Source: Mizuhopecten yessoensis
Taxonomy: Eukaryota
DNA length: 62,857 nucleotides
Direction: 5' to 3'
NCBI RefSeq assembly: GCF_002113885.1
Contig: NW_018408801.1
Span: 1-62,857 of the forward strand
A program made the position numbers and the translations under genes. Below are positions 15,187 through 53,854 of this stretch, piece after piece. The notes under the pieces were generated by a model. That model was not told where the DNA came from, made no database searches, and worked only from the letters and a program-made list of their open reading frames with translations. Position 1 is the first letter of the stretch. The number at the start of each line of letters is the position of its first letter.

Positions 15187-16230
15187 CTACATTCTGTAAG
15201 TATTGTCCGCATACATTTTGTTATCGTAGGCTACTTCCGGTATATTCTCCGTTTTCTCTTCATGAACTGTGTACTTTTTGTGGTTCGGCTTCTTCGTTCT
15301 GTCGCCAAAGTAAGGAATACAACCAAATTAAAATTATTTTGAATTTCTTAATACTAGTCAAATGTATACAAAATACTACTACATGGCATTGGATAGTCCA
15401 AATGTGATTAAAACAAACATACATCTTAGCAGGTGTAGAAACCAATGATGATGTGAATATAAATTTAAGTTGTCCTAAAGGATTGTGAGAAACCATTTAC
15501 ACAAGCTGTTTACTTCAAAATTGGAAAAATGTTATATTTGTCCGTGATTTTTTATCCTTTATCTTTGACCGATGACCATCGATATCAAATCAGGTAAAGA
15601 ACTCGATATTAACGTACTATGGAGTAAATAGGAACTAAAATATGTTCAGGGGTTCATGAGATTTCATTTCAACAAATTTTATTGGTTAGAAAACAAATGG
15701 ATTGGACAACAGGCAAGCCTATATAAGTCCTCTCCAATAGGTACCACATATATACAAGTCAAAGTGAATAAAGTAAATAATAGATAGCATAGATAGTAAT
15801 GTATATAATTTATATAAAGAGATTTTAACATGAAAGCATTGATGGTAGTATTACACAATATTCAGAGAGTAGAATGATTACTTCGGGTAATATATAATAA
15901 TTAAATATGTAAACATCTACTCAAGCTTATACATACTTGTATACTTTCATGAGATATTATGTACACAAGCTTTTCACTACATACGGACACATGAACACAC
16001 AAACCAACCATCGCATACACGCACAAACGGACGTACAGACAATTACTATATACCTCTCTCTCCGTACATATAGGGGTATAATTACCTGTTTTTCACAATG
16101 TATCCGATGGCCACGAGTAAACAGAATCCAAGGATTCCACACACTACTGCTAGGATAACGATTTCCGTCTGGTCGAAAGTGCTGTCCTCGTCCTGTTTTG
16201 AGGCCTGTACTGATGGACTACAGGCGGGGT
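15187..16230 (-). CDS. Giant gene transmembrane and cytoplasmic-tail exons
   Basis: IVILAVVCGILGFCLLVAIGYIV, then basic KNRTKK, then ...VAYDNKMYADNTYRM*. Confidence 0.82.
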
Positions 16231-19200
16231 CTGTAACACATACACGTCATAGCAGTGATGATGCTGAGAATATGTCAACTTTATTTTTACAAATATAGCA
16301 AACACAAAATCATTTCATAAATACAATTATTTATTGTACAGTATTTACAAAGACCGATATCAAGCTCTGACGTAAGCCGACGATACAGTTCACAGTTGCT
16401 TAAACAAAACGAACTGTTCAGGTACCGTTAAATTTCTTATTTAAGCGAACTCAGCTGTTAGTGTTTTATCGAATTTAAACATATAATCGCATTGATGAAT
16501 TGGCGTAATCAAAATATATGCAATAGAAGCTTTATACAGAAATCTCAACTAGGGCAATCATAATTTAGCGCATTATTTAAAGCATGAAAAGCGGTAAAAT
16601 AAGAATTGCGCAAAACATTATGATTTTGCAGTGTACTCATTAAGTTGTCGTAAAGTTTCGAAATTGTTTAAACAAATTAGCAAATTGAAAGATGGATAAA
16701 CAAATAAATACCTGAATTACATGTATCAGTCCACGAGGATTCGCTCTTGTCAGGCTTGCAAACCTGATACTTCTCCCCGGGTTTAGTTTCGTCTTTACCA
16801 TAACAGGCCTCGTCGATAACACAGCTATCACCCTAGAACATTATTTGAGAAAATGAATTTAGAAAGGGGTGAGGGAAAAACAACAAATCATTATATCAAT
16901 ACTACCACTTACGCTATCACGTGACTTTATAATATAGCAGGTAACTATTACAATTCTAAATATACTATTTTTTTCCAGTTGAAATAATCATTGTGACTAA
17001 CCTTAAAGAAAAATATGAGATAATCTAAGTGTGAACGAAAATTTAAATGGAACTGAAAACAGATTTAATCAGAGCAGTAAAGCAAAAAGAATAAGACCAT
17101 GTACTCCTGCAGGTTAAGTGACTTCTATAAGCATATTGCATTATTATATCAACTTCATTGCCTCGCTATAAAATCCTCTCATTCTGGATTTAAATAACTT
17201 TTATTCCACAACATTCAGTTCCTGAAGTTTGTAATTTACCTTTCGACTGCACGTGGATGCCGACGTATCATTAGCGATCGAACATTGGTAGCAGATTGAG
17301 TCGAACACAAGATGGAGGTACTGATTGGTGCTCTGTGTAGCACCATCATTGCTCACTCTTATCAAGGCTCCAGTATTAGCATCGGGCAGACGACATGATA
17401 CTTGGTACATATTCGTGAAGTTTGCAGAAACTGTAGTCTCGAGTCCAATTGATTCTACTGAAGATGTTACCTGTGTCAAGGAAATTACGTTATAGATATA
17501 ACTTTAAACATACATTGTAATTTTCATAAGTTTTGTGTTCAAATCGTTTTCTGTTTGCCCAATTTTCGAACAAGTCCAACAACTCCGCGAACTTTTTGCA
17601 GTATTTCCTTTGGTTATGTCACAATTGGATATATAATAATGTTAAAATAATACCTTGATATACGTGTAGTGACAAGTCAGGGTAGGTGATTCAACAAAGT
17701 TTTGTCCCAGGATCATGACTGTCTGACACCTGTCGCTAGAATGTCTCACATCACATCCGACATTGTTTACTGGCATGGCGTTTACCGTCGGTGTGGTGTT
17801 TCTGGCGGATACCGAGCAGTCAGTTCCGGCGAATCCAGGCTCGCACTGACACACTCCTTAATAAGTTAACGAAGGTTTGTAGTGGAGAACATTTCTACTG
17901 TTACTTCACAATGCGTGAAAACTTTGATATAACTCGACATCAACTACAAGGGCCACCAATATCTATACAAATAACATTATTATCGACTATGTATTAGGTA
18001 ATAGCAAAATAGATAAGGTAAATGCTTTAATCAAATGTAAATATGTGTAATGTGTAATTTATTTTTTGTGCTGTACAACACGTGATAACAGTAACGTTAA
18101 ATAACATAAAGTAAACATCATTAAGACATGTAAGGATCCTCGTACCACTGTCAATAACTGTAAATGAGTATTGGAAACTTAAATAATTTCTGGAAAGAAG
18201 TCCATACCTTGCAAGACGTTTATTAGAATTAATAAAAATGAAATAAACAAAATATCAATCAACAAGTGTTCTGAATATAAAACTTCAGCGGGGCTAGACC
18301 GGGAATCGAACCCTGGACTTCACTTTCTTATACAATCGCTCTAACTTAATAAGCTACCTTGTTGACAGAAGTGTCTTCGACAAACTATGCGAGAGTTATA
18401 TCCAAACGGAGGAAGCTAATGAAGGTAACTGTATATAGGAAAACCACATTGCAGTTGGACAGGTATTCTTACACCACGACATAGAATGCTAGTATCATAC
18501 GCCGCAGGTTTGACCAAATGTAACAAGAGAGGAAATATGCACCGCCTGACCGGGGTTCGAACCCCAGACCCTCCGAGTCCAGTTCCGCTACACTCAGTAA
18601 AACCGTTAGATATTTGGAAGGATGCTAAGTATTATTTTGTATCGGCACCGAATTATCTCTTCGAGCAAGAAGGATTACTCAACTCATATGTGATCGATAT
18701 ATTTAGACACATAATCAGTCGTTAGTTGCTACTTAGATGTTAATTAATCAATTGAGTAGATTAAGAATAAATATACTAAAACATATTAAATCACTCAATG
18801 AAAATGAGCACAGTCAATGACTGCTTACCTTGAGTACAGTTTCCATTTTGGCAGTCCTCACTACAAAGACTAGAGGTATCAATGACAGGTACACTGGAGT
18901 TCGACCCGTTCACTGGAGTCTTGTCCACCTCTCCCAAACATTCCTCCATGATGTCCTTGATTGAATCAAGTGCCCAGACGTCGTCACCAGTAGACTGCGA
19001 AAGGACACAATTATTTTTAAAGAACATGGTCATTTACAATGTTAACANGAGTAACGTCATCAATTTTTGAGAAAACGACGTAATTTTCTCACACAAACAA
19101 ATGACGTAACAATCAATACCTGCTCCCAAGAGAAGATAACTCTGCAATACGCAAAGACGGAAAAGTAAACCTTTCACGAGACAAACATGGAGGAACGTAT

Positions 19201-22200
19201 GTTAATATCATGTCCTCGTCAGATTTTGGAATATATTAAGTGTCTTCTTAAAACGTTTTTTAAAATACCAGGGACTTAAAGTATGGCATCATCATATATT
19301 ATCAAATTGTCGGTACATTATGAACTATTTGATGGAGGAAAAGCAACATACAATGTAGCTATTTTCTGCATCAAATGAAATTCTGAACATTCATAAATAC
19401 TACTGGTGAAATGAACTATAAATATAAAAAAGGAGACATAATGCATTTGCCGTATCCATGACAACGCAGTAAAGCTAACATTTTTAGTCAGGCTCATAAA
19501 AGTTAGCTGAATTATTATATATTCTGAAATATTTCGGTAGCTTACGATTGTGTGATAGTTAAGCTAAAAACCTTTTGGACATAAGAAGAAAATCTGTAAA
19601 TCACCTTTAACCAAACAACAACATATATTATTAGTGTCAGACGTACGTATAAGTCGGCCGCACAGTTGTCTATCCTCTCTGAAATGTCGGAACCATTCAC
19701 CACGCTGTCACACTGGACGGTCACCGAGTTGTTATAGATCGCATTAGAACATACATCTTTAGCTTCATCCAGTGTGTAGTTCAAAGTGTTCTGAGATCAA
19801 TTTAAGAACACACGGGTAATCATGCAGTCAGACATGTTGACATTTTACTATTAAAGTATATAAGAACAAGAAATCCATTCTTTAATCCTTGCGTATGCTT
19901 CTGTTCTCGAAACACTTTTTTGAAATATTGATCAAGATGATGTCAAGATGATTTGTTTATACGTACACTTCGTTTGTTTATAGTTATTTATTGATTAAGC
20001 TTTTCCTTTCTTGCTCTTAATCGTCCAACGAAAATTGAAGTGAAAACGACCCAAACAATGCGATGTAAACAATTTGCAAATATGTTATCCCATTTAATTC
20101 TGATACTACTATATACAGATATTTTTTTATAATAGATACTGTAAATGAAATATATACTGTAATTGTTATATACTTTATGTTATATATACTGTGATTGTAA
20201 TATACTTTATGAAGTACATACTATGATTGTAAAAATAAACTTTTGAATATGTACTGTAATTGTGTTATCCTTTATTACTGTATTATTTGCTGGTATTATA
20301 CTTTATGTAATATATACTGTAATTGCGATATTTACTGTTTATATGATAAATACTATGGCATACCTGCGGCAACACCTCTGGTGTGACTGGGGTAATTGAG
20401 GCCTGACGTTTACCTCTGCCCCTACCACCAAGCTGAGGTAGTCTGGCCTGGGATTCTATCGTCCTAGTGATGTCGTAACCTGTATATTAGCAACTCGATC
20501 ATTAACGTAAACGATGTTTCTGTTTATAAAAAAAATCAAAACTTGGACTTCCTCCTGGAACAGATAGGGTACAACTGCTATGATACAGAAAAAAAATACC
20601 ATAGCGACAACAGAAAACGAAGTAAGAACACAACAAAGTAAATAGAAGATGAAACCAACTTGAGTTTGAAATAAGGTTATAATGGCGGCCATCAGATTTC
20701 TACTGTGTAGATTGTATTCAATCTTGGTCGTATCACACCGGTTAAAAGTATTGATAGGTCGCATTGAATCCCTACAAATCATATGTAGTTAGTTTCATTC
20801 CATCAATAATATCTAACTTCAACACAATTACCAGGCCCCAATTCTATCATACTGAATAAGCTTGACGATAAATAAGGGTAAAAGAAACCTTTTACACAAG
20901 AAATATATATGTATCTTATCTTCATCGAAAACTTTCATAAAATTAAAACTTTATTAAGTACTAGTTTCGCAATTTATCAAATCAATAATACATTTATGTC
21001 TTAATAAGACCAGGTTTAGCCAACACGTACGTGTTTCTAGACACCTCATGGTGCCGTGACTGTTAACACAAAACACCTGGCGACCCTGGACACAGCTACA
21101 GAAGCGAGTGATTCCAGGAACGGTGGCTGCTGGTACTCCAGTGAAAATACTCGCTCCCGAACTGACGCTGGAACAAATATAACAACATAAAAAGCCATTG
21201 TCAAGAAACCATTAGACACGCAAATATAATAGATAGAAAATAATTTCTAGATATCGTAAACCATTTAACATACTAATATAACCCCCGGTCCCCTAAAACA
21301 TACTACTTCTGAATTTGTCAGGCCGTTGTATACAATTAAGCAAGGACAAAGTGGGTCAAATATAGACTTAAATATATTAATTATATCAATGTTTTGGCTG
21401 TTAGCATTTAGGGTATTGATTTGATAAAAGAGTGAAGTGTTGAATGGCTTCCCAGATCTCGATAACCAGGAATTAACAAGACTTACTGCCATTTCATCGA
21501 GAACTCATCTGGATGGCGGTTACTTTCAGGAATGGGTCTACCACGATTGTCGAGGACGTCATTTCCCCTATTTCGGTCGTAAACGCCACAAAGACCTGCG
21601 GAGTTGATAATTTGAATGCTGTTTAACATTGTCATATATAGTTATATTACAAAAGATACTGTTATACATGTCAGTAATTCCGACGTTCTTGCAAAACATA
21701 AGTTCGAATTTCGGGGCCTTCAGAAAATCAAAACTCTAAAATTGCATCTCTGTAACGATGATATAATCGTGTATATTACAGTATAAACCATGTTCCATGA
21801 TCATAAAGTAATGATACATCATAAACCGACCTCTTCAAACATAGCTAGATTTTAAAACAGCACCTTCTCCTAATATAAAGCTTTCTCGTTTTAACCAGAG
21901 CATTTTGTGAAAAGCATTAACTATCTAACAGTCCAACTAGGAAATTGAAATATATATATACATATATTCTCTAACCACAGAAATAATCAGTATCTTGCTT
22001 GGTTATCGTGACAATCTTACCTTCCGTTTGTGAGTAATCCAAGCTGGAAGGTTTAACCCAGATGTTGAGGAAGGGTCGCGCGCTGGATTGGATTGTTACG
22101 ACAGTGCCGGTAGGTAGATGTACCTAAGGTATATCAGTTGAGTTTAGTTAAGAGATAATTGGTAATAGTTTAAAACGATCAAGTTCTAGGTAATATCGCT

Positions 22201-25200
22201 TTAAAATTGTTTCAGTTTTCAAACGTGTTTAACATCATATGCGAAAGTAGTACGGATATTAGGTAGAAGTTAGTTTTGCTTACCTCATACTTTTGTCCGC
22301 ATCCCAGTCGACGGATGACAGTGCCGGGAGTGAGTTTACCGTTCTTAAACATCTGTATCGTGATTGGAGTTGGTGCCGGTTGGTGGTGGTGGTGACGGTC
22401 ATGACCATGGTGGCCATGTTGGGGTTGGGGTGCCATGACGCCATGACTTCCACAGCTCGAAAACGTTATTACATCGTCACCAGATTTTATCGCGACTGCG
22501 CAGTTACATGAGGGATTAGAATGTCTCCGAGTACTGCATTTTTGATACTGTGCTCGGACCTGTAAATAAGAGACATTTGTTACAAAGATAATTCACAGTG
22601 ATTAAAATGGAATGCATTTAGTTAATGTTTGTTTTAACTTACTTTCGGGTTTGTTTTAAATACCTGATGATAAATAGAATGGAATTCGGAAAACAGGAAT
22701 AATCGCTTAAGCAGACTACCATTCCATTTAACACCAATAACTTAAACAAAATAGAAAGACATCAATATATCGATATTGTATTTTTGTGTTTGTCAACACT
22801 TCTCTGTCACATAGCAATATTATTCCTCATTTACTTCCTTTGCAAAATAACATCTTCAATATTTGTTTTATGAACATCTAGTTGAAACAAGCGCAGAATT
22901 ATCTTGCAATTTTATGCTTAAAAATCCGTCATTTTAAAAGGACTATTTCGCAGAAGGATCATGTAAACACTCTATGTACATATTACTACGCGCACGAGAC
23001 TGTCTAGCATTGTCGAGTGACCGAAATAATGGGCAAGACAAAGGTTACAATTACACTTCACACTGTAAATATATACGATATTACCGTTTTATGTTACCGT
23101 AATGATATTGATAACGTTATTTACTGGCAAATTATAATGACATTACTGTTTAGTGATTTTTGTTGAGGAAATATTACGTGCTTGACAAGGTATATGAAAT
23201 GAGAGTGTTCTGAATAAGTTCTAGAGGTTGTGACGAGCCAAATTTAATTGTTATTCACCAGTTAAATGTTATGATATAGAGCGGAAGCATAATTTTGTAT
23301 TCATGAGAACCAACCTCATATGGAAGTGTCTTATGTCGGTACAAAACAAATTCTCCGGTGTTGAAATTGTCATATCGTCTGTAAAAAAAGGAAATAGATA
23401 TCGTAAGAAATCATACATGCAACCTTGGATTTACGAATAAGTACTATTATGAAAAAAACATAATTTAATAAAAAATGAATTCCTAAATGTTGGCACTAAC
23501 CATGCTTATCGTTGCTTTTGTTAAATATGAAACTGTTATTTTTGAAGAATTCATGTTGTAATACATAATTTTTGATAATGATGATTTGAATCCAACTTTA
23601 GTGTAATTCTTTCAGATATCGTATACCTTGTCGTAATTGGCTCATACGTATTAAATAGATATATGTCTGGATTTTAAATAAGCCTTTAATTAGGGGAAAC
23701 AGTTCTTACCTGCCGTCAAACGTTGTGATATGAGGATCATTTAATGATGTACACATAGACTTGTGGTCGTTGTCCTTAGCAACCACCTAATGAAACATAT
23801 CAGAAGTCACTCGTCAATATTCAATTTTATTCATGATATCTATACCAAAGTTAACCTTACAAGATGTAAATGCCCATCCTTTTTTTTATTTCCTATAGCA
23901 TGTCCTACACTTAATTAATAATTATCTTAAGAATTGATTTATATTTTTCTATCTTAATTGTTAAATAATTAATTGAAAAAAATGACACAAAATCTTGAAA
24001 TGCATCATGTTACATCTCTACATGATATTAAATTCATGCAATGGTTAGAAGGACCCTTACATCAATGCGACCGATATTGAGAGTAAGCGAAGTACTGGTC
24101 ACTATCGGGGGTTGCCGGGGAAACGTCACTAGGGCCTGGACGGTCACGTGGGTATTGTGGTCGCGGTCGTACATGTTATCCACCATAGCGGTGATGGGGA
24201 TCTGAATTAGGCCTTGCCAGTTGGATTGCGACAGAGAGGCTCCGCATGACTCCGCTTTTGTGGTCTGACTCGGACCTTTCCATCCGATAATAACTTGTGG
24301 TAGAACCAACTGTCCACACTTTTTGTCACGCCGATCGTAGTCAGTATGAGTCTGAATGACTATAGTACACTGTCCCTTACAACCTTGACAACAGAACATT
24401 TGTGGGGGAGCTGTGGAATTGATGGTGACATACTGGGGAGTCCGCCCCTCGGTCAATACTAGCTTGCCAGTAGTGATAAGCTAAAACAAAAACACAGGGT
24501 TGTGCTTGTTAATATAGATATTCTGTACAGAATGGAATGCATTTGCAAATAAATATTGATAATACATGTAATAATGCAATCATAAGACGTGTTTTAAAGG
24601 GGTTGATTGAAAAAGTGTCAATTTTATACCTGTCTTCGAGAACACTTCTTAGGTAAATGTACGGTTTAATGTTATAAGTGGCTGGGTCATTACAGTATCA
24701 TAAACATGATCCTACCTTGATGGTGGGGATGAAGAGTGCACTGGTGAGTTTACTCGTCAGTCCACTTTGACCTTTGTACCGAGCCTGGATGGAACACGTC
24801 ACCTGGAGAGATGCAATTCGTAAATAATTTATTCATAAATATTAAACAGGTAATTCATCTCTAAGGGACTGTAGTAACTTTGTTAGAAAATATTACAAAT
24901 AATGTCACAAGAGTTATTTCACAAACTTGTCACCTTTTCCTTTACTTAATTTTGTCATACTGCAACTCCATTTCAGTTATTCAAAGTTCCGAAACCCTAG
25001 AATTGGTAAAGGTTACACAAGTATGTAAAAACGCTACTAACATGTACACACTTTATCATACCTAACCTGTTTGTAATTATACCTTTTTGTTGAACAGGTT
25101 GTCATTGATGCTGGCAACTGTAAACTTATAACTATCCGTCAATCCAGACACGATGTTCATTAGTTCACAATTCCCATTGATGTTCAGGCAGACAATAAAT

Positions 25201-28200
25201 TCAACATTTTCCTGATATGACTTTTCGAAAGCACATGTGAAGAAAGCAGACCCCTGCCCGTCAACTCCAGGTCGGATATGAGGATGCACGTTGTAAATTG
25301 GCAGGCCGGGTTTAGTTGGGCGCGGTGTAGTTGTGCGAGGTGTAGTTGTACGAGGTGTTGTAGTTTTAGGTGTAGTGGTCGCCTCTGTTGTGGGTTTCGG
25401 AGTAGTTGTCGGCTTTGGTGTGGTAGGTTTCTTTGTTGTCGTTGGCTTAGGTGTTGTTATGTCGTCTGGTTAAAAGAGCAAACAAAAATATATTGAGGCG
25501 AAAAGTTGACTATTTTTTTTTTACATTACATGTTTGTCATAAAATGTTTATATACTTTAATACATTTCTTTAGAATGGCAGATAATCCAAGATTGACAGA
25601 CAACATACGTAGAGTTCCCCCGCGCTTGTAATTTTGACCTAAAATGACTTAAAATATTGTAGGCAGTAAAAAGTAAAAACAATCATTTGTTGTACCTATT
25701 CACAAATTGATTGTATTTTGCAATTGTAGGGACAAAAAGAAAATCCCAAAAGAAAATTTACTTAATAAAATAAAATCAATAATAGATTATCTATTGTTCA
25801 CATGTTTAAAATGTCTTATCCGGTATATATATGTATGAGGCGGAGATATTAGGTGTGTACCTTTACAGATCCAGCCTTTATTACAAACGTCTGTGGTACT
25901 GGCAGGGGGAGGTAATGTTGTCGGTGCCTTCGTTGTTGTTGGAGTTGTCGCCCTTGTCGTAACGGGTTTACGGGTTGTGGTCACTAATACAAAAAAAACA
26001 TTAAGAAATGAACATGACAGGCTCGGTATATAGTTTCATTAGAGATAGTAGAAATGGTTTCATTTTGCAGGGGGACATAACGTTAACAAATGTATTTTTT
26101 ACGCTATTCAGTTGACCAAAAAGTGGTATTTGAAATGCAAATCAAAATATCGAAACTGAACGAAACAGCAACATAAAATCGATACCCTTGTATATATTTC
26201 ATACATTTCGAAATGCTACTCTTCCTGTAAGAAAAAGGTAATACTTATAGCGATAACTTCTTATTAAAAGAGTACCACGTCTGATTATTAGAGGATCTAG
26301 CTTCGTGGGTATTAAAGTGTATGTGTGTGATGTTGACGTTTGAATCATAAACAAACGTAAGTAACATTTTATAAAGGTTAAAAATGTTTCTTTTGAATCG
26401 AAAATAATAACTTACCTTAATTACAATGAAATACTGATAAGATCTTCCCCTTTTTTTAATGGAAAAAAATAACTTACCTTATTGAAAAAGATTCTCGTCT
26501 CAGATATATAGTGGAATGTTGCTTTATACCTAACCAGTTGATGTGCAGCCTTTTGCGTTTTCGTAGTGAGAATCAAAACCAGTGGGATTCAAGATACTTA
26601 TATATGATCTTGCTATGCCTTTAATGTATCACGTGTATTTACATGAAGTCACTCGGTAAGAAAAACAGAGGAAGTGCATGCTGTAAGTCTTCTCTTAAAT
26701 CACTGATTACCTACAAAAAGTCTACAACATTTCTTAAATCATTTTATAAGACGACAATCCATCCCAGAACAAAACTTTATAAGACAAGAGCACCGCAAAC
26801 GGATGCATAATACGCCCGTCAGACCCTATCCAATGATTTTTTTTGTTTATTTGATATTCAAAGTACCTAGTAGCTAGTGTCATGTCTATGTGATAAAAAT
26901 GCTTGCAGTGATGCTTTTGTTACCAAGGGTGATTGTCATCACTGTAATGTTCACATTTATGTAATTGGTTCTTTGTTAATGTACTGCCTCGTGCCTCTTA
27001 ATCAGGGCATGATGTAGACCATTGAGAGTAAGTTTTTTACTCCCCTAAACTTTATTTGACTTATGGGTTTATAGGGACATGTGTACCATAATTGGCTACG
27101 ATTATGCAATTTACAAAAATAGGAATTATTTTCCCAAATCAAATCCATTTTGTCCTTGTTAGACCCCACATAAACATCGATACCAAAGGTTAGGACAATA
27201 ACACATGATCTGATTGAACTGTAGACCACTGAAGAAACTTGCATCCAAACTTTAACCGGACGGACGCAAACGCTAAACATAATACCCCCGTCGAATTTCG
27301 ACGGGCGTATACAAATAATGCTTTTCATAGCATAAGACAGGACACATATAAGTATCGAAAAGTGGTATATATGTTGCAAAAACCGTAGAAAGAATGTATG
27401 ATCATTTTTCTTCTTTAATGATCACGAACCACGTGAGACCGGTTGGGATCAGGAAGCACATAACACAATGTCCTTACTTACCTTTACTTGGCGGGAAACC
27501 GATGATTATGTCGATGTCAATAATGATGTCGATCCAGACTTGCCAGCAGTGGATGGACTTGAGGTAGAAGTCTACCTTTGTCGTGGACGAGACTGTTGGT
27601 GGCTGTCCTACGTAAAGATGCTGGTTCGAGCTGTTGACCAACTGATGGGATATTTGTGTCGTACTAAAATCTACAATCTGCTTGTCTACATACAAAATCA
27701 AACCCTTGTCAAGCGCCCAAGAGACTACGATGGAATTGAAGGACGAGATGGTAAGTTTGTCGCGGGGTACAGACACGTACCATGATACAGTTGAAGTGGA
27801 GACAACACACTGGATTTGGCCAAATCTATAGACGAGGGCAATTCCTGTTCCATCCGTTTTCTCTCCTCCACTTGACATGATTATAGTATTTTCCTGGAGT
27901 GATTCAAACGCCACTTCAACCTCAAACGTGATCCCAGACTGACACATATCAAGATTACCTAAACATGTGTTCTTGTGCATGCCGAAGTCAATGTAGTGGG
28001 TTGTTTGTGTGATGTGGAGGGCCATCTGTTTGGGGTCCACCGTAGCCCCACCGTATACATGTAGCGTAATGTTCTCAGACGTAATCAGATTCGTCTGGCT
28101 GATTTGTGTGAACGACCAGTTGTAGGAAACTATATTCTTGGCTGATGTAGTAGTCGGGGGCTTTGTTGGTGGCAGTGTTGTTGTTGGCGCCTTTGCTGTT

Positions 28201-34200: not shown

Positions 34201-37200
34201 TATATAAATCTTGCCACAATTGAATGCATAAATATATAAAGTAGTTGTATAATTTATAAGTACAGTGAGAAGCTTTGGAGTATGAAATATATTTCGCAAA
34301 GTGAAATAACATGGGTATATAAAACAGTTTTTAGTAAGGTGGGATGAAGAAAGATAGAAATGCAGGTGTATGCGTGTATTAGTAACGACAATTCTAGACC
34401 ATTAATCATGTTCTATCGCATTTTCTAGAAAAGGTGAACTTCAAACATAAATGGTTTTGATACAAATGTATACTGTCTATATTTCTAGAATAAATATCAG
34501 ATACAGTAAAGCTTTGTAAAACTAGCCACAACTTATTATGCTGTCCATCTATCGAGTTTGGTTACTTATCCCCCTCCCTTTATATATGAGTGTGTCTTAT
34601 TTGTCATCATTGGAATGATATCTTATAGTTCTTCACCTAGTTTTCATAAATCCACATTTTACCAAAGACTAAATTTAGTGTCGAGATTAACGAGGTTCTA
34701 CGAAACAAGTGTGTCAATACACTGGCGTTTTGCATAATATACTAACTAGGTCAATTGACTTATCTACTTAGTAAGTGTCAAACCCAAAAAGGAATTCGCA
34801 TACTATAGAATAGTGTAGATTCAAATTATTTTTATCGCAGATGCATACATTTTGTAGTACATCGTTAACAGAACTATAATATTATTTACAGACGGACGAC
34901 CAATACCATGCTTCAGTATGATACGAGAATGCGTCTGGTCGGAAAATCAAACCTGATGAATATTTCTTATTTTAACACAATTTATAACAAAAAATCGTTT
35001 TAAAAGGCATTCTTTAAAAATAACTTATTTTAACATATGTTAAATATTAGGAATAACTACACCGTTTTCTGTATGTAACCAATAAGATATAATTACATTT
35101 CAGGTTATCGCAATCTCTATTCTGGCATGCCTAACTGATGACAAACAAATAAAATCATTTATGACATTAGTCAGTTTATAGAATAGGAATAATGTTTATA
35201 GCTCAGATAATCAAACAAACATTTACCTGACGATGGTTTCGTTGGCTTAGCAGTACTTGTTGTTGTGGTTGGTACTGAAATGAAATGAAACTTGCACTTA
35301 AAGACGAGTGAACGAGAAAGTGAGAGATATTTAGTATGTAAGTTACAATAATAAATTTGACATGGATACACTGATTGTTCGATTTCAAGAAAAGATCACA
35401 GAGAATGTCAAACGAAAACGCTGTATTTAAAGACAGTAAGGTATGGATATACATTAAGAATAGTACATAAGGACAGAAACATACATACTATATTAACTTT
35501 TAAATTAGGCAATTTCGGAATTGCTTTATACATATATAACGAAAATCGATGAAAAGGACGAAAAAATAAATCAATAATATAAACATCACTTTAGTTCTGC
35601 TTACCGGTGATGACACCTTGGGTCACTAAATCTGTCCTCTTAGCGTCGTATGTTTTCAGACCGTTGAATGTCACTGATACCTCAGAAGACGTGCTAACGT
35701 AGCCATAACCCAAAGTTAATTCCCTTGGTTTTATCTTAAGCGCCGTTGGGCGGGGCTGTGGTCGGGTAATGCTACCGATCAGCTTGCCGTTGTTAAGGAG
35801 TTCGATTCCGAGAGAAGAACTCCAGGAGATCTCGAGGTGCTGCCAAACGCCTGTGACCAGACTAGTGGTTGTTGTGAGGCTCCATATGAGGGTCTCAGTC
35901 GTCACTATATAGTGTAGCTGTTTGGAAGCGTAATACAGCGTTAAACCCATGCCGTCAGGACGATCACCACCATTAGAAATTATATAGGTATTCTCCTCCA
36001 GTTTGTTGAACATGACATTCAGGTTGATTGTAAACCCAGAGCTACACGATCTTATATCTCTAAGACAAGACGGAAACACAGCATTACTGACTGTTACGTA
36101 ACTATTGGCGCCGGTCACGTGCATTGCCTGTCCGAGAGATGAATTAACCAGACTCACGTGGCCTTGGATGTTAAAAGTCAGGGCTGTCGTCGTATGGATC
36201 ACGTGCTTGATGATAGTTGTTATTTCAAAAACAGTCGTTGTAAGTGTCGTAACTGTTAACAGAAGATATGAATAAAAAGTAATTATATTGTACAAAGCTA
36301 CTCAAAGGGTACATCATTACGATTCTTTTAATAATTTCCACATTTATTCTGGATATTTCGTTTTAAATTTGTGGAATAACTTAAATTTCTTTAATTGATA
36401 CCCTTCTGTTTAAAAAGCAGGAATTCAAAAAGTATCGTTAGAATTATATATAAACAAAGCTTTAAAGTACTCACCACTGCAGTCCGATCCGTAAAACCCA
36501 CGTGTACACGCACACTGTTGCTGGCCGACACATGTTCCGCCATTCTTACAAAAACCCGAGGAGCACAGCTCTGTCAAGTTCAAAAGATTCATTATTACTA
36601 GTGACATGCCAAAAACATGCAATGGATAATCCATATGAAGAAAAAAAGCCACATGTTTGGCTGGAGATGAAAATAGGGGAACCACACACAGAATTGATTG
36701 ACCAAACTGTGCAATGCTACTAATTCCTCTATGTTAATGAACGTTCGCTTTGTGTTCCTACATGTTACCACTGACAGGCAATAAGTAACTTTTTAAAAGA
36801 TGAAATATCATAAAATGAAACAAACTAACAAAACCTACAAATTACACATTTGAAGGAATTTGCAATGCCATTGTACACTATCATAAAAACTTCAGCAAAA
36901 TTGAGATGTAGATAGGAACCATTGCCATAATGTGTAAAAAGAAAAAATAGATGTCACGACGTCCATCTTCGATGACTGAACGATAATTCAATCACGTTAC
37001 TCCTATCTACATATGCCCATCAAACCTATTGTATACGTTCATGTTATAGTATCTTACAAGTAGACTCTGAAGAAACGTCAGGAAGCCATTTAGCAGAAGG
37101 AAAATAAATAGAAGAATAAGAAAAAAGAAGGATTAGAAGAAAGAGACGTAAAACAGGTGGGGGGGGGGGATATTTGTGAAATATGTAGATTACCTGAAGG

Positions 37201-40200
37201 TTCACAGCCCAGGACGTCGAACCGAAAGCAGGGATTTATCTCACTGGTGAGAGGATATATCCTCAGGGCATCTATGGCAACGTGGGGGTTAACACTCAAC
37301 CAGGACTTGCGGATGGTACTGTTGGATATTGCGTCAATCGTCTACAGCAGAGGTAAGCTTATTTATAGACTTTTCGCCTTAAGCTTTAATTCATTATCTT
37401 AAAGTTCACTTTTATAAATTTAAATGGCCTTCCCTTACGACAGTTTTGTATTCTTAGTATTTTTGATTTTTCTGGGGATGACATTTTACCATGTGTATTT
37501 TAGCAAATGCCAATTTCCTCCTTGCATATCACTTTAGCATGTATTATATGAAATAAATGCTTTCGTAACTTGCAAAACGTTGTAAAGTACACTTTTTTTC
37601 TGTGTAAAATCCTTTATGACTAGACCATGTATTCAACATTCCATACATATAAGTGTACCTCTATGAAAACATAATCAACGACATCACAATTTTCCGATAT
37701 GAGTTATTACTCTTGATAATTACATATCCCGTGAAATGTGTACAGGAGTAAGGACACATATCTTTTGGTTCTTTTTTTTCCAAAATGTAATACCTACTGG
37801 TGCTACAACCCTCCATTGCTTGAGAGAATCTTCTGATAAGATGATCTCCAGGCGAAAGGTCTTCATAAAGAAGGTCGGTGGGATGAGAACTCCCAGCATA
37901 GACGGAGGCTGGATCTCAAGTCCACCAAAGGCCACAGGTGATGGAAACATGACCTCGTACCACGGAGTGAGATCAGCGTGAGCAGGGCACCAGCCGCCGA
38001 TAACATCACCTGTCAATAGGTGTACATCGTCTATACGGTCTAGTTATCTAGATATAGCTATATGTGGTTAACATTGAGATTATGTATTTTAGATGTAATG
38101 AAACTATATACAAACTATCTAAAAATAAGCTTTCAAATAATTTTAAATTTTGAAATTTAGTTTTATGTATCGTGCGATGTATGTACATTTGTCACGTTTT
38201 CTTAACATGATTTGGATGTTACATCTTGACCACACACATTCTTACCTTTGCAACAGTAGTTCAGCCTCCCCATATCCTTGGATTGGTTTTTGGCAGACGT
38301 GGACACTCGTAGATGATCCGACGATAATGTGTTATCACCTAACCCTTGCCTAGCCATGCACGCTAAAATATAAACCAGACACTTGGTCAAATACTGTATC
38401 GGATTTTCAAGTTTGTTTATATAACTTGGCAGGTTCTATCAAAATATTTCTAAAATCCACCAAACGAAGTAATGATGACAGTTCACCACCGATCAATAGC
38501 TTTATTCATTTTGTTTAGATATTGACTTGTCTCTTAACTCGACCTTTATACCTGCCTAGAGTTATGGAGTTAGGACAAAATTCCGAAATTAAAATATTAA
38601 TTTTGTTATCAAAATAAAGCTAAATAATCTCATGAGAGACAGTTACTTTGACATATCCAGTCCTCTTCACGCGTAATAAATAAGTTATATTTTGTGATAT
38701 GTTAAGCAATCAAGATTGTATCTCAGAGATAGCGACAATGTTACATGCAACTCGGTGAAATAAACGTATGAGTGGTGATACATACCGTTTGCAGGTGGTT
38801 TACCTGAGATAAAACATAAAAGGCAATGATAAGTTCAGTGCAAAGATGTCATTGGAAAGTTGAATTAAAAATGTAATTATAAAAGAGTACCATGTTCACC
38901 ATTGATATTGTTGTTATTTAACAAATGAATTTAAGAAAATGATTATAATGAAAACATATCCATACAAAAAGTTAAAGCACGTACTCGTTTCAGTTTCACA
39001 GAGATTACCACTGAAGCCGTAGGGACATTTACATACTGCATTCTGTAAACATTGTCCTCCATTCTGACAGTCAGGGCAGATGTCTGGACAAACAAAATAA
39101 CACAAAAGTTTACTAATTTGGTCTAACTTAAAATGGCCTCCATCAGACATGACAATATTGCATTCTACTTGTTCTACGTGTATGGCAAAAACCGTTATAA
39201 TGGCATATCTAACATTTTTGTTTTCACATACAATGATAAAGTTTACATAACTAGATTTTTATTTTTATTTAGAGTTGTTTGTAAAATATCACTGTTTCTC
39301 ATAGTTGTCTTCATCGTTTATTCGTTGACAATTGCTTTATTATGATGTAAGTTTGGCCTATCCCCTCTTGATATACCTTTTTTTCAAAATTTTTGCATTT
39401 TGTCACAGTGCTATAGTATTTATACCTTTAGGAGAACATCCAAAGAGTTGTAGCCGCATGCATGGACTGTGGTCAAAAGATACTATGTTTATCCTCATCT
39501 TGATAAGGTTACTGCCTCCTGCATCCATAACAGTTGCTGAATGATTATTAAGCTGTGTATCCTGATAAAAGAAAATGGATAATTGATAGATTAGAATTGA
39601 TGTAGAAACAAACATTTTAAAAACAGAATGATTATGATTAACGGTATATGTACTTAAATGATTAATTGCTTACTTTATTAGCTCAAAAACCTAATCTATG
39701 TGTATAGTATGTAATTTGAAATATTAATTTGTTGGAGAACAATATGAAAATATGTACCATGTGCATAAGAAAATTATGGATAATAGTTAGAACTGATACT
39801 ATACCATATTCACAACAATTCGTTAATAATGATCCTATGGTCACGTCCAAGCAATTTATAACCGTTTTGCAATGCCTTTTGGAAGACAACCGAGTTCTCA
39901 CAGACATACCGGTATTTTCATCACGCACGTTCATTAAAAAACCCTTTTACTTTTATATATTTCAAAACGAATATATTTTTTTCTTTTTTACAAATACATA
40001 AACAGTCTTTATGACATTAATCTTGCTCACAGCTTTTTGCGCTTCCCATTTTGAATTTTCCTTTGAAGAATTTGTGTTGGTTTCAATCAATTTCATGCTC
40101 ATTTTTACATATAGCCACTGTGATAACATTATTATAAAGTAATCATATGATACAGATGGATAAATTTGTTTTTCCTATTAACATACGTAAATGTAGAAAG

Positions 40201-43200
40201 AAAAAAAATGACTGCACACGCTAGACTAGCTATCAGTCTCTATGATTATCCCTTATTTCTTATTCATGTAAACTAACTTAAACCAGTCTACATGCTCCTG
40301 ACGATCAGAAACACACACTCGAGTCCATCAACAAGACATTTTACACGTGCATGTAATTATCAGTAAAGTATCAAAGTAGATTGTCTCAGGAAGATAGTCA
40401 TTCCAACACATACAACGTAGAATTGTTTATTGAATTATATTCCTAAAGTTTCATCTTTACGCTTACAATAGCAGATGTCTTACTCGTTCAAGTATTATCT
40501 ATCCAATGGTTTACAACAATATGCGGTTATTTTGATCATGTGATTGAGTATCATCATAATAAAACATCTTACAAAGGTTGCTACGAGTTGGTCCCAGGCA
40601 GAATGTTTATCAAATGTTGTCAAGAGCTGTATCTGTCTAACGTTGCCTTTACCAACACTGCTCATTATCTGGATCTGATGCACGACGGTCGGTTCAGCAA
40701 AGACGATTTCGATTCTGTTGTTGTTAGTTGTGTTGTCACCACACCATCCCTGTCCTTTTGGGTAACATAGGAACATGATTACCAGTTGTGTATTTATCAG
40801 CCGGACAGTCAATAAAACGATAAAAAACAATGGAGATTAAAGAGAAAAATACATTCGCTAAACTATGTGATTTTGATGAGATAATCATATATCTGATATT
40901 TTCGTTCTCCTTATTGCATCATAAAAACATTCTCAAATCTCTAACGCATGACGTCATCATTATTTGGACATTGGCACTAAGTTGTCACACATGTGCGATT
41001 TGAACCTCTTAGATTCTTATTCGAGCGTAAAGATGAAGGAGAAAATGAACTTAAAGTATATTCATAGTACGTTCCGTTTTGAATGTACAGAGCAACTGAT
41101 CCCATACTCGTATAGATGTACGTATTTCCGTGAAGGTTTGATGAGAACAATGATACATTAAAACTTTATAAAGTACAATGAAGTGGAACCGCACCAGCAT
41201 TATGGACAATTGATGTCTTCCAAAATGTAAATAAATAGTTGCCACGTTTGTTTGCTATACAACCGACGACATATCAACAGCTTCCTGATCCTATTAACAG
41301 AAAACGTTATCAAAGATAAATGAAAAGATGCAGAATAATTGAGTTTTTCCGGAAATCATCTATGTACTTACCATCAGGTGTGATTTGTGCTTTGTCGGCG
41401 TTATGTGAAGACACTGATATCATGGCCAGAGAGAGTTTCCCCTCCTTCCATAGGTCGTCCATACAGTCTGTAAGAATGAATATCAATTAGTGAATAGGAC
41501 ATAACATCTTCTTTTAGAACACATAGACAGATGAATGCAACATGAACGATTCAGTTGCAACAAAGCAGAACAGCTACTATGGGGGGGGGGGGGGGGGGGG
41601 GTTCTTATAACAACTAGTTTTTAAATTCACCCAACCATGATGAAAGATTATATTATAATATGAATAGTTTCAATAAATCAGTAGATATGGTTCGATTAAT
41701 TAATAGTTATTAATTAATTCTGTTCCCAAGTGGTATTATAAATTAGTTTTGGCAGTTTCCCCAATGATGGTCTTTATCAGAACGATTTCTCAGAAAAAAA
41801 TGACCTTGTTTACCACAGTGTTTAGCTGCAATGTTTCAATATAATTGTGATTTCTGCAAGACTTGAAGTGAGCCTAGATAAAATTGTCCCGGTCCATATT
41901 AATTATTAGTACTTTAGTATTGTGTTTAATTTGGAACATACTTATAAGTTATGACACATTGTCAACTGAATGTAATAGTGTGATGTACATAAACGGCGTA
42001 TTTAATATTCAATTAACTTTTTTTAAAGAGTGTATATACTTTTGACTTGTTTTTATGTATTTTAAGTCGCATGGCTATAACAATGAAATGATCTGTTTTA
42101 ATGAATGGGAAATTATTTTGAATTGTTTGGAAAAGGTGACATTAGCACAATACTTCTAATATTTACACATGTCAAAATAAGAATAAACCACTGTAGAGCA
42201 TCATTAATTTATCTAACACTAAAACAGTTATCCCACTGACCAGACCTCGTTTAGGGACATATTGAAATTTTCCTATACAAAATTGCCCTAGTTATACAGT
42301 CGTGTTAATGTCGGGCCGGGTAACAACAAAGCATCTCTTGCTTGAAATTAAGACGACCGGATTTTCAAGGCTCCAAATAACGTGAGGTGTCTGTGTGTAA
42401 ACAATAATATACGGATCTGGCTGTTGCATGTATTCTAATAGAGGAATCGCAACTGTGTAACCATATAGGATAACACATTTCATCTCCGTGCATCGTATCT
42501 GAGCAACCAGTAATCTGTTTTATTCGAATCCCTTTCAGTCATTTTGATATTCAAACCCATTTATCTTCCATGATGAAATGATTCGTTTGTAGATACCTAC
42601 AATGGTTCCTTTATACAAAGAGCCGGGTCTTATCAGTATCAACACACCTATAGATAAGAATATCTCACATGACACATATTGGTATTTAGCAGTGAGGTCA
42701 TACATATTTGTACCATTCATACAATTATCACGCTGTTTACAAATTATTTTTCGTATATCAAATCTCTAAAAGAATTGTTTCATTTTGATCAGTATCAATG
42801 TTAAAAATGATGGTTAACAATTATATACTGTACAGAGGATAGCATGTAATAACTGGCAATTATTTGACGAAAATAAAAGGATTAAAGAACACGAAAAAAA
42901 TACTTTTAAATTGAATTTTAAATTGAATGATAACAAACGTAGAGATAACTTTGTTATTGGCCAGTAATATTTCTTCTTGTTCACGTGATCCATATGATTA
43001 TATCATCAATATAATTTATATGATTCATGATGTCGTCACTCCGTCATAATAACGTTTGATATCAATCTCTAATGCCTTATAATAAATCGTTGTCCCAGCA
43101 TGCGATGTATGCACCACGTACACGCTTATCTGTTGATGTGAATTGTTTTAAATAGTCTCTTTTTCTGTAGTATACTTTACTGTGTGCTTACTGCCAACAT

Positions 43201-46200: not shown

Positions 46201-46981
46201 TTCGGGATATATTACACACGGGACATGCCCGAATCCTTATCATTAACAAACAGTTGGAAATGATTGTAACATAGAAACATAATCTGTTGATAAAAATGGG
46301 AAATATTGAAGTAGGACTACCTTTGTTTTCCAGCAAGTTTGTTTACATAATATAAATGTGTTTGCAACCAAAGATAATGTTATTAGACTTTGTTTGCCGA
46401 CACAGCCAAATACTTATCTTGCAGATCGGTCAGTGTGGTTCATACATACCGACTTGTGTGTGGTTTAGATTTCTGATTTCAAGCTACTTAATCAATTAAG
46501 AATGACGACCTTGATATAACTGAACCCACGTTGAGAGTGAATCGATTTAAGAATGCTTTCAGTTTGCCCATTGTCTAGCGTAGTCTTCAACAAAATGCAT
46601 AAGTACTTTGAAATCATTTTCGAATTGATGGCAAAAGTCTCTCAATACTTTGAATACATACGATTATTATTATTATATGGTTATAGCATACCGATAAACT
46701 AAAGCCCTGCTGAATATGTGATTGTAAAGTCAAAAGGATTCCACATCATTGCATAATTCATTTGAAATGTTAATTTTATCATTTTGCTCTTTTCCCCGAT
46801 TTATTGTGCATAGAAATAACGAAAATGCCTGTATAAAACACTTGTCAATAACAACCACTAAAACTGCGTTTGTATATCCAAACATTAATTATACAAACTA
46901 ATTGGACTCACCTGTTTTTTCCATCTGGCAGGCCGCCAATCCAATAATGGCGAGGAAGAGCAACGGTCGTGTTGCAAACAT
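15187..46981 (-). CDS. Giant type I membrane protein, VWDE-like (VWD + EGF) with N-terminal F5/8C, EGF, four LamG/pentraxin-like and mucin modules; 35 exons, 7128 nt, ~2375 aa
   Basis: Hand-spliced, phase-consistent GT-AG exons: 46981-46912, 41467-41372, 40754-40573, 39561-39426, 39083-38985, 38803-38786, 38362-38246, 38009-37798, 37341-37194, 36570-36475, 36252-35605, 35274-35227, 33286-32648, 32025-31972, 31649-30999, 30195-30157, 28339-27482, 25983-25861, 25465-25083, 24802-24716, 24480-24061, 23786-23710, 23378-23315, 22559-22284, 22123-22021, 21595-21487, 21167-21031, 20479-20364, 19790-19647, 18994-18829, 17856-17654, 17470-17240, 16832-16712, 16230-16086, 15298-15187. The frame is open throughout. 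AATAAA at 15124-15119. Confidence 0.85.
15955..16083 (+). mobile_element. Degenerate HINE-type 3' end
   Basis: ACAC/GGAC microsatellite-like run, then CTATATACCTCT...AGGGGTATAATT, abutting the donor of the TM exon. Confidence 0.45.
16712..20479 (-). CDS. Giant gene post-VWD region: RGKR site, Cys-rich helical segment, EGF and juxtamembrane Cys-rich domain (6 exons)
   Basis: GRGKRQ...EAKDVC...IDNCAADL...CSEDCQNGNCTQGVCQCEPGFAGTDCS...GQNFVESPTLTC...CVIDEACY. Confidence 0.85.
18287..18600 (-). mobile_element. Two degenerate tRNA-derived (SINE-like) heads
   Basis: Minus-strand B boxes GGTTCGATTCCC (~18315-18300) and GGTTCGAACCCC (~18565-18550), with an A-box-like TAGCTTATTAAGTTAGAGC. No complete cloverleaf. 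Confidence 0.5.
21031..23786 (-). CDS. Giant gene von Willebrand factor type D (VWD) domain (6 exons)
   Basis: [28 protein letters not shown]...SCNCAVAIKSGDD...FLNIWVKPS..D...TEGLCGVYDRNRGND...FSMKW. Confidence 0.92.
24061..25983 (-). CDS. Giant gene mucin-like PTT(K/P) stalk and Cys-containing pre-VWD region (4 exons)
   Basis: TTPKPTTTKKPTTPKP...TTTPR repeats, then FTCAF...VTCSIQARY...INSTAPPQMFCCQGCKGQC...W..LIQIPITAMVD. Confidence 0.8.
26779..27314 (+). mobile_element. Non-autonomous Helentron-associated (HINE/DINE-1/pearl-like) element in an intron
   Basis: ACAAGAG start. Sub-terminal inverted repeat ATACGCCCGTC (26810-26820) / GACGGGCGTAT (27300-27310). (GGAC)n microsatellite remnant. 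3' hairpin CCCGTCGAA-T-TTCGACGGG (27287-27305). Confidence 0.7.
27482..28339 (-). CDS. Giant gene Thr/Pro mucin repeat (TTKAPTTPP) plus LamG/pentraxin-like domain 4 (858-nt exon)
   Basis: Minus-strand reading PTTKAPTTPP repeats, then CLGNLDMCQSGIT...MSSGGE...GIALVY...VSWALDKGLILYVD. Confidence 0.88.
30999..31649 (-). CDS. Giant gene LamG/pentraxin-like domain 3 (651-nt exon)
   Basis: CLQDLTTCDNGFT...FSSGGD...GIALYL...WHTYQVSWNDVDGFIVYIDG. Confidence 0.88.
32648..33286 (-). CDS. Giant gene LamG/pentraxin-like domain 2 (639-nt exon)
   Basis: CLQAIDTCSHGFS...LSNGGD...GVALLY...EISWSKTLGSKLYING. Confidence 0.88.
33562..33735 (-). pseudogene. Relic (pseudo-exon) duplicate of the 5' end of the LamG-2 exon
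   Basis: Retains the TTTGCAG acceptor. In a shifted frame it encodes LVGNIMQTTSLLKQNIHGHVTL versus the real IVGNVIQTTSNLTLNIHGHVTL. Confidence 0.7.
35605..36252 (-). CDS. Giant gene LamG/ConA/pentraxin-like domain 1 (single 648-nt exon)
   Basis: CLRDIRSCSSGFT...ISNGGD...GLTLYY...WQHLEISWSSSLGIELLNNG. Confidence 0.88.
36475..36570 (-). CDS. Giant gene EGF-like exon 2
   Basis: CSSGFCKNGGTCVGQQQCACTRGFYGSDC. Confidence 0.9.
37194..38362 (-). CDS. Giant gene F5/8 type C domain 2 (3 exons)
   Basis: CMARQGLGDNTLSSDHLRVSTS...GRLN...GGWCPAHADLTPWYEVMF...ALRIYPLTSEINPCFRFDVLGC. Confidence 0.85.
38985..39083 (-). CDS. Giant gene EGF-like exon 1
   Basis: [28 protein letters not shown]. Confidence 0.9.
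39426..41467 (-). CDS. Giant gene F5/8 type C (discoidin) domain 1 (3 exons)
   Basis: CMDDLWKEGKLSLAMISVSS...GQGWC...IEIVFAEPTVVHQIQI...KMRINIVSFDHSPCMRLQLFGC. The ending CMRL.L.GC is typical of FA58C. Confidence 0.8.
41581..41601 (+). repeat. G21 homopolymer in intron 1
   Basis: Directly visible. Confidence 0.95.
45395..45612 (+). mobile_element. tRNA-derived V-domain SINE (BivaV-like), degenerate
   Basis: A box TGACACAGTGGTTAG and B box GGTTTGATTCCC. The core GGGTTTTCTCGAGGAACTCCAGGTCCCTCCTAC (45493-45525) resembles the V-SINE core GGGTTTTCTCCGGGTACTCCGGTTTCCTCCCAC. Confidence 0.7.
46912..46981 (-). CDS. Giant gene exon 1: signal peptide MFATRPLLFLAIIGLAACQMEKT
   Basis: CAAC-ATG context, hydrophobic core and phase-1 donor CAG|GTGAGT. 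Confidence 0.8.
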
Positions 46982-52700: not shown

Positions 52701-53732
52701 GGCCGAGCTAGCTATCATTAAATCCCAGCAGGAGCAGACAGCTGTGGAAGGATACCTAAAGACTTTACATGATCGTAAGTATGCGGACGACCATAGCGGG
52801 TGGATCAACTTATGCAATGGCTTTGTTTTAGTTGGCATATATTGCGATCTGGTTCGGTTTCTAGATAATTCTAGCATTAAATGCAAAAATGTTTTTGTAC
52901 CTATGAACATTGCTACATGGCATACATATTTTTTTATTTATATATAGTATATTTGCATAGTTTTCTCACTTTTTGTGTTGTACATATAAATCATGTGTTT
53001 GTGTTTATTCTGTGCAATCCATGTGGAATGCTGTCAGGACAACACATGTCCTGCAAACCAGTTTAAGAAAAAGGACAATAACTTGTAGATGGTTTTGATC
53101 AATGTCACTCGCTCATTAACTATTAAGTGAGCAACCTCTCTTTGCAGCTGAGTATGGTAGTACCGATCATCATCAGTACTGGTTCGGAGCTAACGACTTT
53201 GTAACTGAGGGGGACTGGAAGTGGGCAGTTACCACGGAGACGATCAACTATACCAACTGGCGGCCCGGCAATCCAGACAATGGCGGCGACGACAAGGACT
53301 ACGACGAGGAACACTGCGCGGAAATGTCAGAAGAACACAGCTGGCAGTGGAACGACAATGGGTGTGAGGAGGAGAAGCACTTCCTGTGTGAAATGATGTA
53401 AGCGACAAAGACACGTGCAGAATAGAACTGGTTCAACCGGTCAAACGTTTGATTTTTTAGAAAAAATATATTTGTTTATCACCATGTCGCACATCTATCG
53501 ATAGTTCATATAAAGAAAGCTCCACTTTTAATGATGTCCTTGTTGACATCACATGGACCATTTCATAACAGCATGATTCAGGAACGAACGTCCATGGTAT
53601 AACAATTAGTCCTATTGAATATAAAGAGTGACAATGGCTTACAGCCACCATAGGCTAACATGTCATTTACCTTATCGTTAGTAAATGTTATAACATGATG
53701 CTGACTTCTGTTTCAGTAATGAAGAAAACTAG
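49743..53732 (+). CDS. Secreted single-domain C-type lectin, perlucin-like, ~195 aa; exons 49743-49788, 50575-50631, 52274-52398, 52681-52774, 53148-53397, 53717-53732
   Basis: MTWMMKSVLAVILILARGKAQ...CTHSFVLLDGSCYKGIKVSATWPEALAYCEVFGAELAII...YWFGANDFVTEGDWKW...YTNWRPGNPDNGGDDKDYDEEHCAEMSEEHSWQWNDNGCEEEKHFLCEMINEEN*. Six CTLD cysteines, a WIGL-like WFGA and WND. The last exon is supported by its homologue at ~57974. Confidence 0.9.
50660..51029. repeat. ~370-bp direct duplication, copy B (lectin intron 2)
   Basis: Near-identical to 48731-49099. Confidence 0.95.
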
Positions 53733-53854
53733 TTCACAGCCATTGCACTGGTGCCTAATTATTTGAAGGTAAATTAACAATATTAGGTATTTAGTAATGA
53801 TACTAAAATAATTTGTATTTATTTACTGTTACAGTTTTTAGAAGTTTTACGATA

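Follow-up and report, generated by a model that had tools for sequence, protein, structure and literature searches.

A scallop gene for a membrane-anchored protein with six candidate binding heads above a VWDE-like base

Does a long minus-strand locus of the scallop Mizuhopecten yessoensis, in which discoidin-type (F5/8C), EGF and laminin G (LamG) domains precede a mucin-like stalk, a von Willebrand factor D (VWD) domain and a transmembrane helix, hold one gene, and what might its product do? We analyzed contig NW_018408801.1 (assembly GCF_002113885.1), a stretch of 62,857 nucleotides (nt) referred to here as the window. An original prediction made from the sequence alone had placed in it a single gene of 35 exons encoding 2375 amino acids (aa). 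The model that we rebuilt from the sequence was identical in size, with 35 exons running from 46981 to 15187, 7128 nt, 2375 aa, GT-AG ends at 34 of 34 introns and one, terminal, stop. The end of exon 8 was fixed at 37798 by the frame; a donor at 37794 shifted the frame and was rejected. An extra 33-nt exon at 43830-43798 was left out, because the orthologous transcript splices exon 1 straight to exon 2. The single N of the span, at 19048, falls within intron 29. The gene is real, transcribed and single, and we propose, with a probability of about 0.45, that its product is a type I cell-surface glycoprotein that is cleaved, stays tethered like MUC4 and serves as a receptor for capture and uptake.

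RefSeq divides the homologous gene in Pecten and in Aplysia, and the same division in Mizuhopecten would give two adjacent genes, one for a secreted LamG protein and one for a VWDE-like membrane protein. RNA reads were mapped to 22400-28390, the stretch that links the LamG and VWD halves, so that own-species RNA covers 7 of the 34 introns (exons 17 to 24; the tissues of the runs are coded). Spliced contigs of run X1 confirmed seven joints at the predicted sites, from the fourth LamG domain (LamG4) to the VWD domain. The exon 17-18 joint, whose shorter side measures 23 letters in the joint table, was among them. Moreover, one X1 contig ran 725 nt past 22400, the exact sum of the remaining part of exon 24 and exons 25-29. 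Another extended 3285 nt upstream of exon 17, compared to 3253 nt of modeled coding sequence; with a 5' end likely near 47476, this length fits only if the second LamG domain (LamG2) is included in the transcript. In another scallop, a single transcript contig (L043, 7633 nt) covers the protein in full, signal peptide through tail, and its matches to exons 1-5, 7-11, 15 and 17-35 follow the same order, at 48-100% identity. LamG2 is intact in Pecten, decayed in Ylistrum and missing from the L043 transcript. The division into two genes, which draws on the split RefSeq models and on partial read-through into intron 17, is thereby largely refuted: the two halves are joined in RNA, in Pecten the models part at a frameshift within the homologue of exon 21, in Aplysia a gap of 22 bp separates the two models and the first is flagged as partial, and no signal peptide was found from exon 18 onward. 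Three further raw RNA runs gave 11, 1 and 55 reads, those of the latter two on an intronic repeat only, and expression of the gene therefore seems restricted.

Intron 17 was the sole intron with X1 contig coverage, and it contains several AATAAA/ATTAAA signals as well as repeat pieces. Read-through meets a stop two codons past the donor, and the product would be a secreted, heads-only form of about 1372 aa carrying all six heads. A stop just inside this intron is also present in Pecten and Ylistrum; we did not count it as evidence, since GTAAG-type donors in AT-rich introns often give such stops.

We then turned to the membrane-proximal half. Pfam searches of the model were run exon by exon, whole-protein searches and the long fold prediction used natural orthologues (P0001, P0094 and P0022), and the joined 2375-aa model itself was used for translation and local scans only. 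The predicted orthologue base (predicted local distance difference test [pLDDT] 83, predicted template modeling score [pTM] 0.79) contains two Ig/FN3-like domains followed by a VWD-helical-EGF unit, and this unit matched the D assemblies of MUC5B, VWF and MUC2 at Z 23. Comparison of the base with shark VWDE by HHalign returned a probability of 100 and an E value of 3e-68 over 687 columns at 26% identity, supporting the VWDE-like base that had been proposed. The base is thus composed of two Ig-like domains and a mucin-type D assembly, collinear with vertebrate VWDE yet anchored in the membrane. We infer that the final beta-sandwich is IPT-like; this domain and the Cys-rich module after it were barely covered by the fold search. 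As for the predicted domain list, the two F5/8C domains, the EGF, LamG and VWD domains (Pfam) and the transmembrane helix were recovered, but the list had omitted the two Ig/FN3-like domains, the helical domain, the late beta-sandwich and the Cys-rich module.

The likeness to vertebrate VWDE extends over a collinear Ig-VWD-helical-EGF-beta-sandwich-Cys block, in which the Vwde helical domain comes after the VWD domain (PF26129 and PF00094, both on orthologues) and the second Ig/FN3-like domain aligns with VWDE. Both proteins also carry a non-Gly xDPH motif (TDPH in VWDE, NDPH in the scallop) and a basic cleavage-type site at the matching position, that of shark VWDE being aligned with the scallop RGKR. 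However, most vertebrate VWDE proteins contain D8C (PF23283) and Ig_VWDE (PF25776), neither of which was detected in P0001, P0094 or P0095-P0102; in the scallop protein's family an Ig fold occupies the place of the VWDE Ig domain without a BLAST match. Vertebrate VWDE is secreted and ends in an EGF array, whereas the scallop protein has one EGF domain past VWD, then a transmembrane helix and a tail. It further differs by its N-terminal F5/8C-EGF-LamG-mucin extension, and it falls on a separate branch (this and the other trees quoted are quick trees). Descent from VWDE would also suit a protein that stores growth factors at the membrane, or serves there as their co-receptor, during development or wound repair, on the model of the VWD proteins BMPER and RGM. 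The collinear base is in favor of this idea, as limb regeneration in the axolotl depends on VWDE (PMC7390686), and so is the restricted expression suggested by the few reads in the three other RNA runs. We nevertheless consider it quite improbable, given the missing D8C domain and EGF tail, the separate branch, and the presence in Mytilus of other VWDE-like proteins that do bear D8C.

At the N-terminal end, the modeled LamG3 domain (pLDDT 91) is a ConA-like jelly roll. Its top Atlas structure match was a chordate ADGRD1, with a TM score of 0.77 over the whole domain, bacterial LamG_3 domains being level with it (TM score 0.72-0.77). The resemblance to ADGRD1 that had been noted from the sequence thus holds at the level of the fold. 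Solved structures matching LamG3 included an arabinanase domain, toxin N-lobes, PAPP-A, PTX3 and ADGRG4, and the LamG heads matched ADGRG4 and PTX3 by both profile and structure (PTX3 profile E value, 4e-7). None of 53 LamG repeats matched the Pfam Pentaxin family (PF00354), and some Asp/Asn columns are conserved among the repeats. The Foldseek list was full of N-lobes of botulinum and tetanus toxin binding domains, but at 12-16% identity; as these share the LamG jelly-roll fold and are tied with the arabinanase domain, pentraxins and PAPP-A, we rejected kinship with toxins. The folds of the LamG and F5/8C heads are common to sugar-binding and protein-binding domains alike. Indeed, the pentraxin-like domain of ADGRD1 binds a protein, PLXDC2 (PMC7902839), and the related domain of ADGRG4 lacks the calcium sites of CRP (PMC10687090), so that the label "multi-lectin" cannot be kept as a fact. 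The LamG resemblance likewise does not make the scallop protein a G protein-coupled receptor (GPCR) of the adhesion type: ADGRD1 (GPR133) and ADGRG4 share the head fold, but the scallop protein has one transmembrane helix and neither GAIN/GPS nor seven-transmembrane region (no GPS or 7tm_2 Pfam match). It is neither an adhesion GPCR nor a vertebrate-type VWDE.

Three features beyond those listed originally were found in the conserved motifs: a furin-type site, NDPH in place of GDPH and a Tyr-Asn tail motif. R-x-[KR]-R occurs at one position in all complete single-module orthologues, within a loop that is disordered in the orthologue model (pLDDT <50), and is missing at that position from the tandem-array proteins described below. 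Since the furin-type site is conserved, a sheddable ectodomain, as originally suggested, is plausible. NDPH was found in 26 of 27 family modules. Cleavage at GDPH involves a cis Gly-Asp bond, and the resulting pieces stay disulfide linked (PMC10880436); cleavage at NDPH is therefore uncertain and would by itself release nothing. Scallops, mussels and Lottia retain the His-rich loop inside the VWD domain, though not at a constant length, and it is weak or absent in most other orthologues; a role as pH or metal sensor is possible. The short cytoplasmic tails have little sequence in common except basic residues at the membrane and the pattern [FY]xNxx[YF]. Of 9 lineage representatives, 6 show the strict pattern and 2 more a near variant of it, at 30-49 residues past the membrane in every case, and the chance of finding it in a single shuffled tail was 0.006-0.085. 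Mussels and Sinanodonta have the exact form [FY]xNPxY, and scallops have YDNKMY. (Fx)NPXY and the FENTLY sequence of the mannose receptor are internalization signals (PMC5297682), and by this resemblance the tail motif is a candidate uptake signal.

To place the gene in a family, homologues were searched with exon 21 and then, in follow-ups, with the Ylistrum orthologue; word-based searches with the LamG region were insensitive (8 and 3 matches). The nearest proteins came from scallops (84-86% identity). The layout of F5/8C-EGF, LamG repeats, mucin, Ig, VWD and transmembrane helix was found in scallops, Mytilus, Sinanodonta, Haliotis, Lottia, Bradybaena and Aplysia, with a two-module form in the nemertean Lineus, and signal peptide, transmembrane helix and tail are retained in the bivalve, gastropod and nemertean orthologues. 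All relatives are named uncharacterized, hypothetical or VWDE-like in the databases. This is thus an old, unnamed mollusc family, already in databases, that spans bivalves and gastropods and has a nemertean relative. The architecture had been put forward as one not recognized from a characterized protein; none with it was found in the searchable papers, but it is not unique, the same layout recurring in this family. The single-module anchored forms make up one branch apart from vertebrate VWDE (12 rows; Shimodaira-Hasegawa-like approximate likelihood ratio test [SH-aLRT] support, 100). Their LamG number ranges from 2 to 7, and across bivalves and gastropods the repeats cluster by their place in the row (first, middle or last). 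A paralogous array (contig C4479:265856-405759, plus strand) contains at least 9 tandem LamG-Ig-Ig-VWD(NDPH)-helical-EGF modules over 140 kb and encodes either one giant protein, with about 1000 aa per module, or an array of genes. Argonauta, Bulinus and Pecten have comparable tandem proteins, the Pecten array being cut into pieces by RefSeq.

Several side observations concern the same modules. Pecten has exons 30-32 twice in near-identical copies (L044:15217-17650), a real duplication or an assembly artifact. In P0103 (Crassostrea gigas) the same base is combined with a C-type lectin and, past an internal transmembrane helix, a long tail; P0133, also with this base, is a cadherin-bearing form with a YANPVY tail motif. 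Within the Mizuhopecten genome, the same LamG subtype is present in a PKD1/REJ-looking gene with C-type lectin exons (C1259:76857-113029, plus strand) and in a six-LamG gene with no GPCR link within 40 kb (C5162:387750-403648, minus strand), which identifies it as a mobile module.

What was observed is the gene, its splicing between exons 17 and 24, the order of the domains, their folds and the conserved motifs; from these we infer every functional step of the proposed receptor. The Thr/Pro stalks would be O-glycosylated and hold the six heads (two F5/8C and four LamG) off the membrane. A proprotein convertase would cut at RGKR, and the halves would stay joined because the helical domain packs on VWD as in mucin D assemblies; held in this way, the head half could be released later. 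The heads would bind an extracellular partner multivalently, whether glycan or protein, and the tail would recruit clathrin adaptors for uptake or polarized sorting. Retention of intron 17 may add the secreted heads-only form. A bolder version, which we regard as unlikely, would make the protein an equivalent, in lophotrochozoans, of the mannose and LDL receptors that was independently constructed on a VWDE/mucin D assembly: furin processed, multi-headed and endocytic, with a changeable number of heads and a heads-only form secreted through regulated retention of intron 17, for microbial recognition or particle uptake in mollusc epithelia.

Several points weigh against the capture-and-uptake proposal. 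NPxY motifs also bind phosphotyrosine-binding (PTB) adaptors and talin in adhesion receptors, the tail pattern was defined post hoc, and its scallop form lacks the Pro of NPxY. Furin-type cleavage at RGKR is a prediction, and NDPH may not be self-cleaving, the known motif being GDPH. The retention of intron 17, found in one sample (X1), may be incomplete splicing. Finally, the closest animal LamG domain binds a protein, not a sugar (PMC7902839).

An alternative is a structural membrane mucin or an adhesion or junction protein, such as MUC4 or insect Mesh, which would build the epithelial glycocalyx or link cells via its heads and use the tail only for sorting to a surface. LamG and F5/8C domains are typical of the adhesion proteins neurexin and Caspr. 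Like MUC4, SUSD2 and Mesh, the scallop protein crosses the membrane in type I orientation and carries a mucin stalk over a VWD domain with an Asp-Pro motif, followed by an EGF domain and a transmembrane helix, and the short tail completes the gross plan of MUC4 (MUC4 cleavage, PMC10880436). In addition, the related ADGRG4 domain homodimerizes on a long Ser/Thr stalk (PMC10687090). However, the scallop protein lacks NIDO, AMOP and Sushi domains (Pfam) and has two Ig/FN3-like folds before VWD, NDPH instead of GDPH, a C8-like helical domain, a furin-type site and six N-terminal heads. Its mucin stretches are short (about 40-100 aa each in a composition scan), and the tail ends have no common PDZ-type motif across species, whereas the Tyr-Asn motif is kept. 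We therefore hold a structural or adhesive membrane role to be possible but on the doubtful side.

A fourth alternative, in line with the adhesive or matrix role suggested originally, is that the shed ectodomain enters shell matrix, byssus or pedal glue and is cross-linked via the His loop. VWD, EGF and discoidin domains do recur in marine adhesives, and the sea-star footprint protein Sfp1 has discoidin, VWD, EGF and C8 domains and is processed into subunits (PMC7037938). Scallops, mussels and Lottia retain the His-rich loop, and the window also contains a gene for a Gly-rich secreted protein. But Sfp1 is a secreted 426-kDa cohesive protein with no LamG domain or transmembrane helix in its domain table (it was compared by description only), and most gastropods lack the His loop. 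Moreover, the Lottia orthologue (170497) was not found in two shell proteome supplements in which a positive control worked, a paper on limpet pedal mucus mentions no laminin G or discoidin protein, and the family occurs in a shell-less nemertean. These results speak against the suggested adhesive or shell role, which we consider very unlikely.

With the mannose and LDL receptor families, the scallop protein shares a row of binding domains, a single membrane pass and a short tail with an [FY]xNxxY signal, and shedding of the mannose receptor is known (PMC8551360); with no extracellular domains in common, this is a likeness of design only. In the proposed capture role, the base of the protein would work most like that of MUC4, and the heads and tail most like those of the mannose receptor; the protein is a member of neither group. 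Planarian equinox was rejected as a relative, having TSP1 domains and no VWD domain (PMC9117669). No description of this architecture was found in the searchable literature, most subscription journals being outside its reach.

Features of the scallop gene, with coordinates in the window and the evidence for each
Feature	Position	Strand	Evidence
Whole coding span	15187..46981	-	Exon assembly, RNA joints and orthologue transcript
5' untranslated region start (probable)	47373..47476	-	First 103 nt of orthologous transcript, 91/103 identical
Exon 1, predicted signal peptide	46912..46981	-	Hydrophobic N-terminus; 54% to orthologue N-terminus
F5/8C (discoidin) domain 1, exons 2-4	39426..41467	-	PF00754 weak on exon 3; orthologue P0094 E 8e-11, two stretches
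EGF 1, exon 5	38985..39083	-	Six-Cys pattern; 77-88% to orthologues
F5/8C domain 2, exons 7-9	37194..38362	-	Pfam on window exons and orthologues
EGF 2, exon 10	36475..36570	-	Sequence pattern; Pfam on orthologue
LamG/pentraxin-like domain 1, exon 11	35605..36252	-	PF13385 E 6e-8
LamG domain 2, exon 13	32648..33286	-	Copy of LamG1 lineage
LamG domain 3, exon 15	30999..31649	-	Pfam; predicted fold, pLDDT 91
Thr/Pro linker and LamG domain 4, exon 17	27482..28339	-	Pfam, RNA joints
Intron 17, partly retained	25984..27481	-	X1 depth 10-13 over most; spliced joint 18; other introns ~0
Thr/Pro/Lys mucin-like stalk, exon 18 and start of exon 19	25310..25983	-	Composition scan
Two Ig/FN3-like beta-sandwich domains, exons 19-21	24061..25309	-	Orthologue AlphaFold model; Ig/FN3 matches Z 9-11
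VWD and following Cys-rich segment, exons 22-27	21031..23786	-	PF00094 E 1e-11, 5e-12 on orthologues; GLCG calcium-loop pattern
NDPH, aa 1724-1727, at GDPH self-cleavage position	23730..23741	-	Sequence
His-rich loop inside VWD	22383..22445	-	Disordered in orthologue model
Furin-type site RGKR, aa 1985-1988	20406..20417	-	Between VWD and helical domain
Vwde helical (C8-like) domain, EGF 3, beta-sandwich, Cys-rich module, exons 29-33	16712..19790	-	PF26129 on orthologues
Transmembrane helix, aa 2314-2332	16106..16162	-	Hydropathy 3.19; in all complete orthologues
Cytoplasmic YDNKMY, scallop form of [FY]xNxx[YF]	15211..15228	-	Orthologue comparison

Elsewhere in the window, a single open frame at 1441-2226 (minus strand) encodes a 261-aa secreted Gly/Tyr/Lys-rich protein with no Pfam match, which resembles Gly-rich proteins of shell or periostracum. 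On the plus strand, divergent to the gene, the stretch 52249-57252 contains exons for at least two C-type lectin domains that are similar to each other (PF00059, E value of 1e-10 at 53120-53398). Tandem repeats of 207 bp and 76 bp occupy the contig end (62080-62857), and smaller arrays were found at 2332-2539, 8019-8212 and 20130-20325.

The layout is new to description, yet it is built of known parts and already present in databases, and at present the protein is one of many mosaic surface proteins of molluscs. The gene nevertheless gives shape to an old receptor-like family whose members stand in databases without a name, divided in two or under the label VWDE-like. It also reveals that the VWDE block, whose only known setting was a secreted vertebrate protein that has hardly been studied, serves as an anchored base with heads and in giant tandem arrays. 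If the tail drives uptake, the family would be a candidate for the capture of particles, glycoproteins or microbes by mollusc epithelia or digestive cells.

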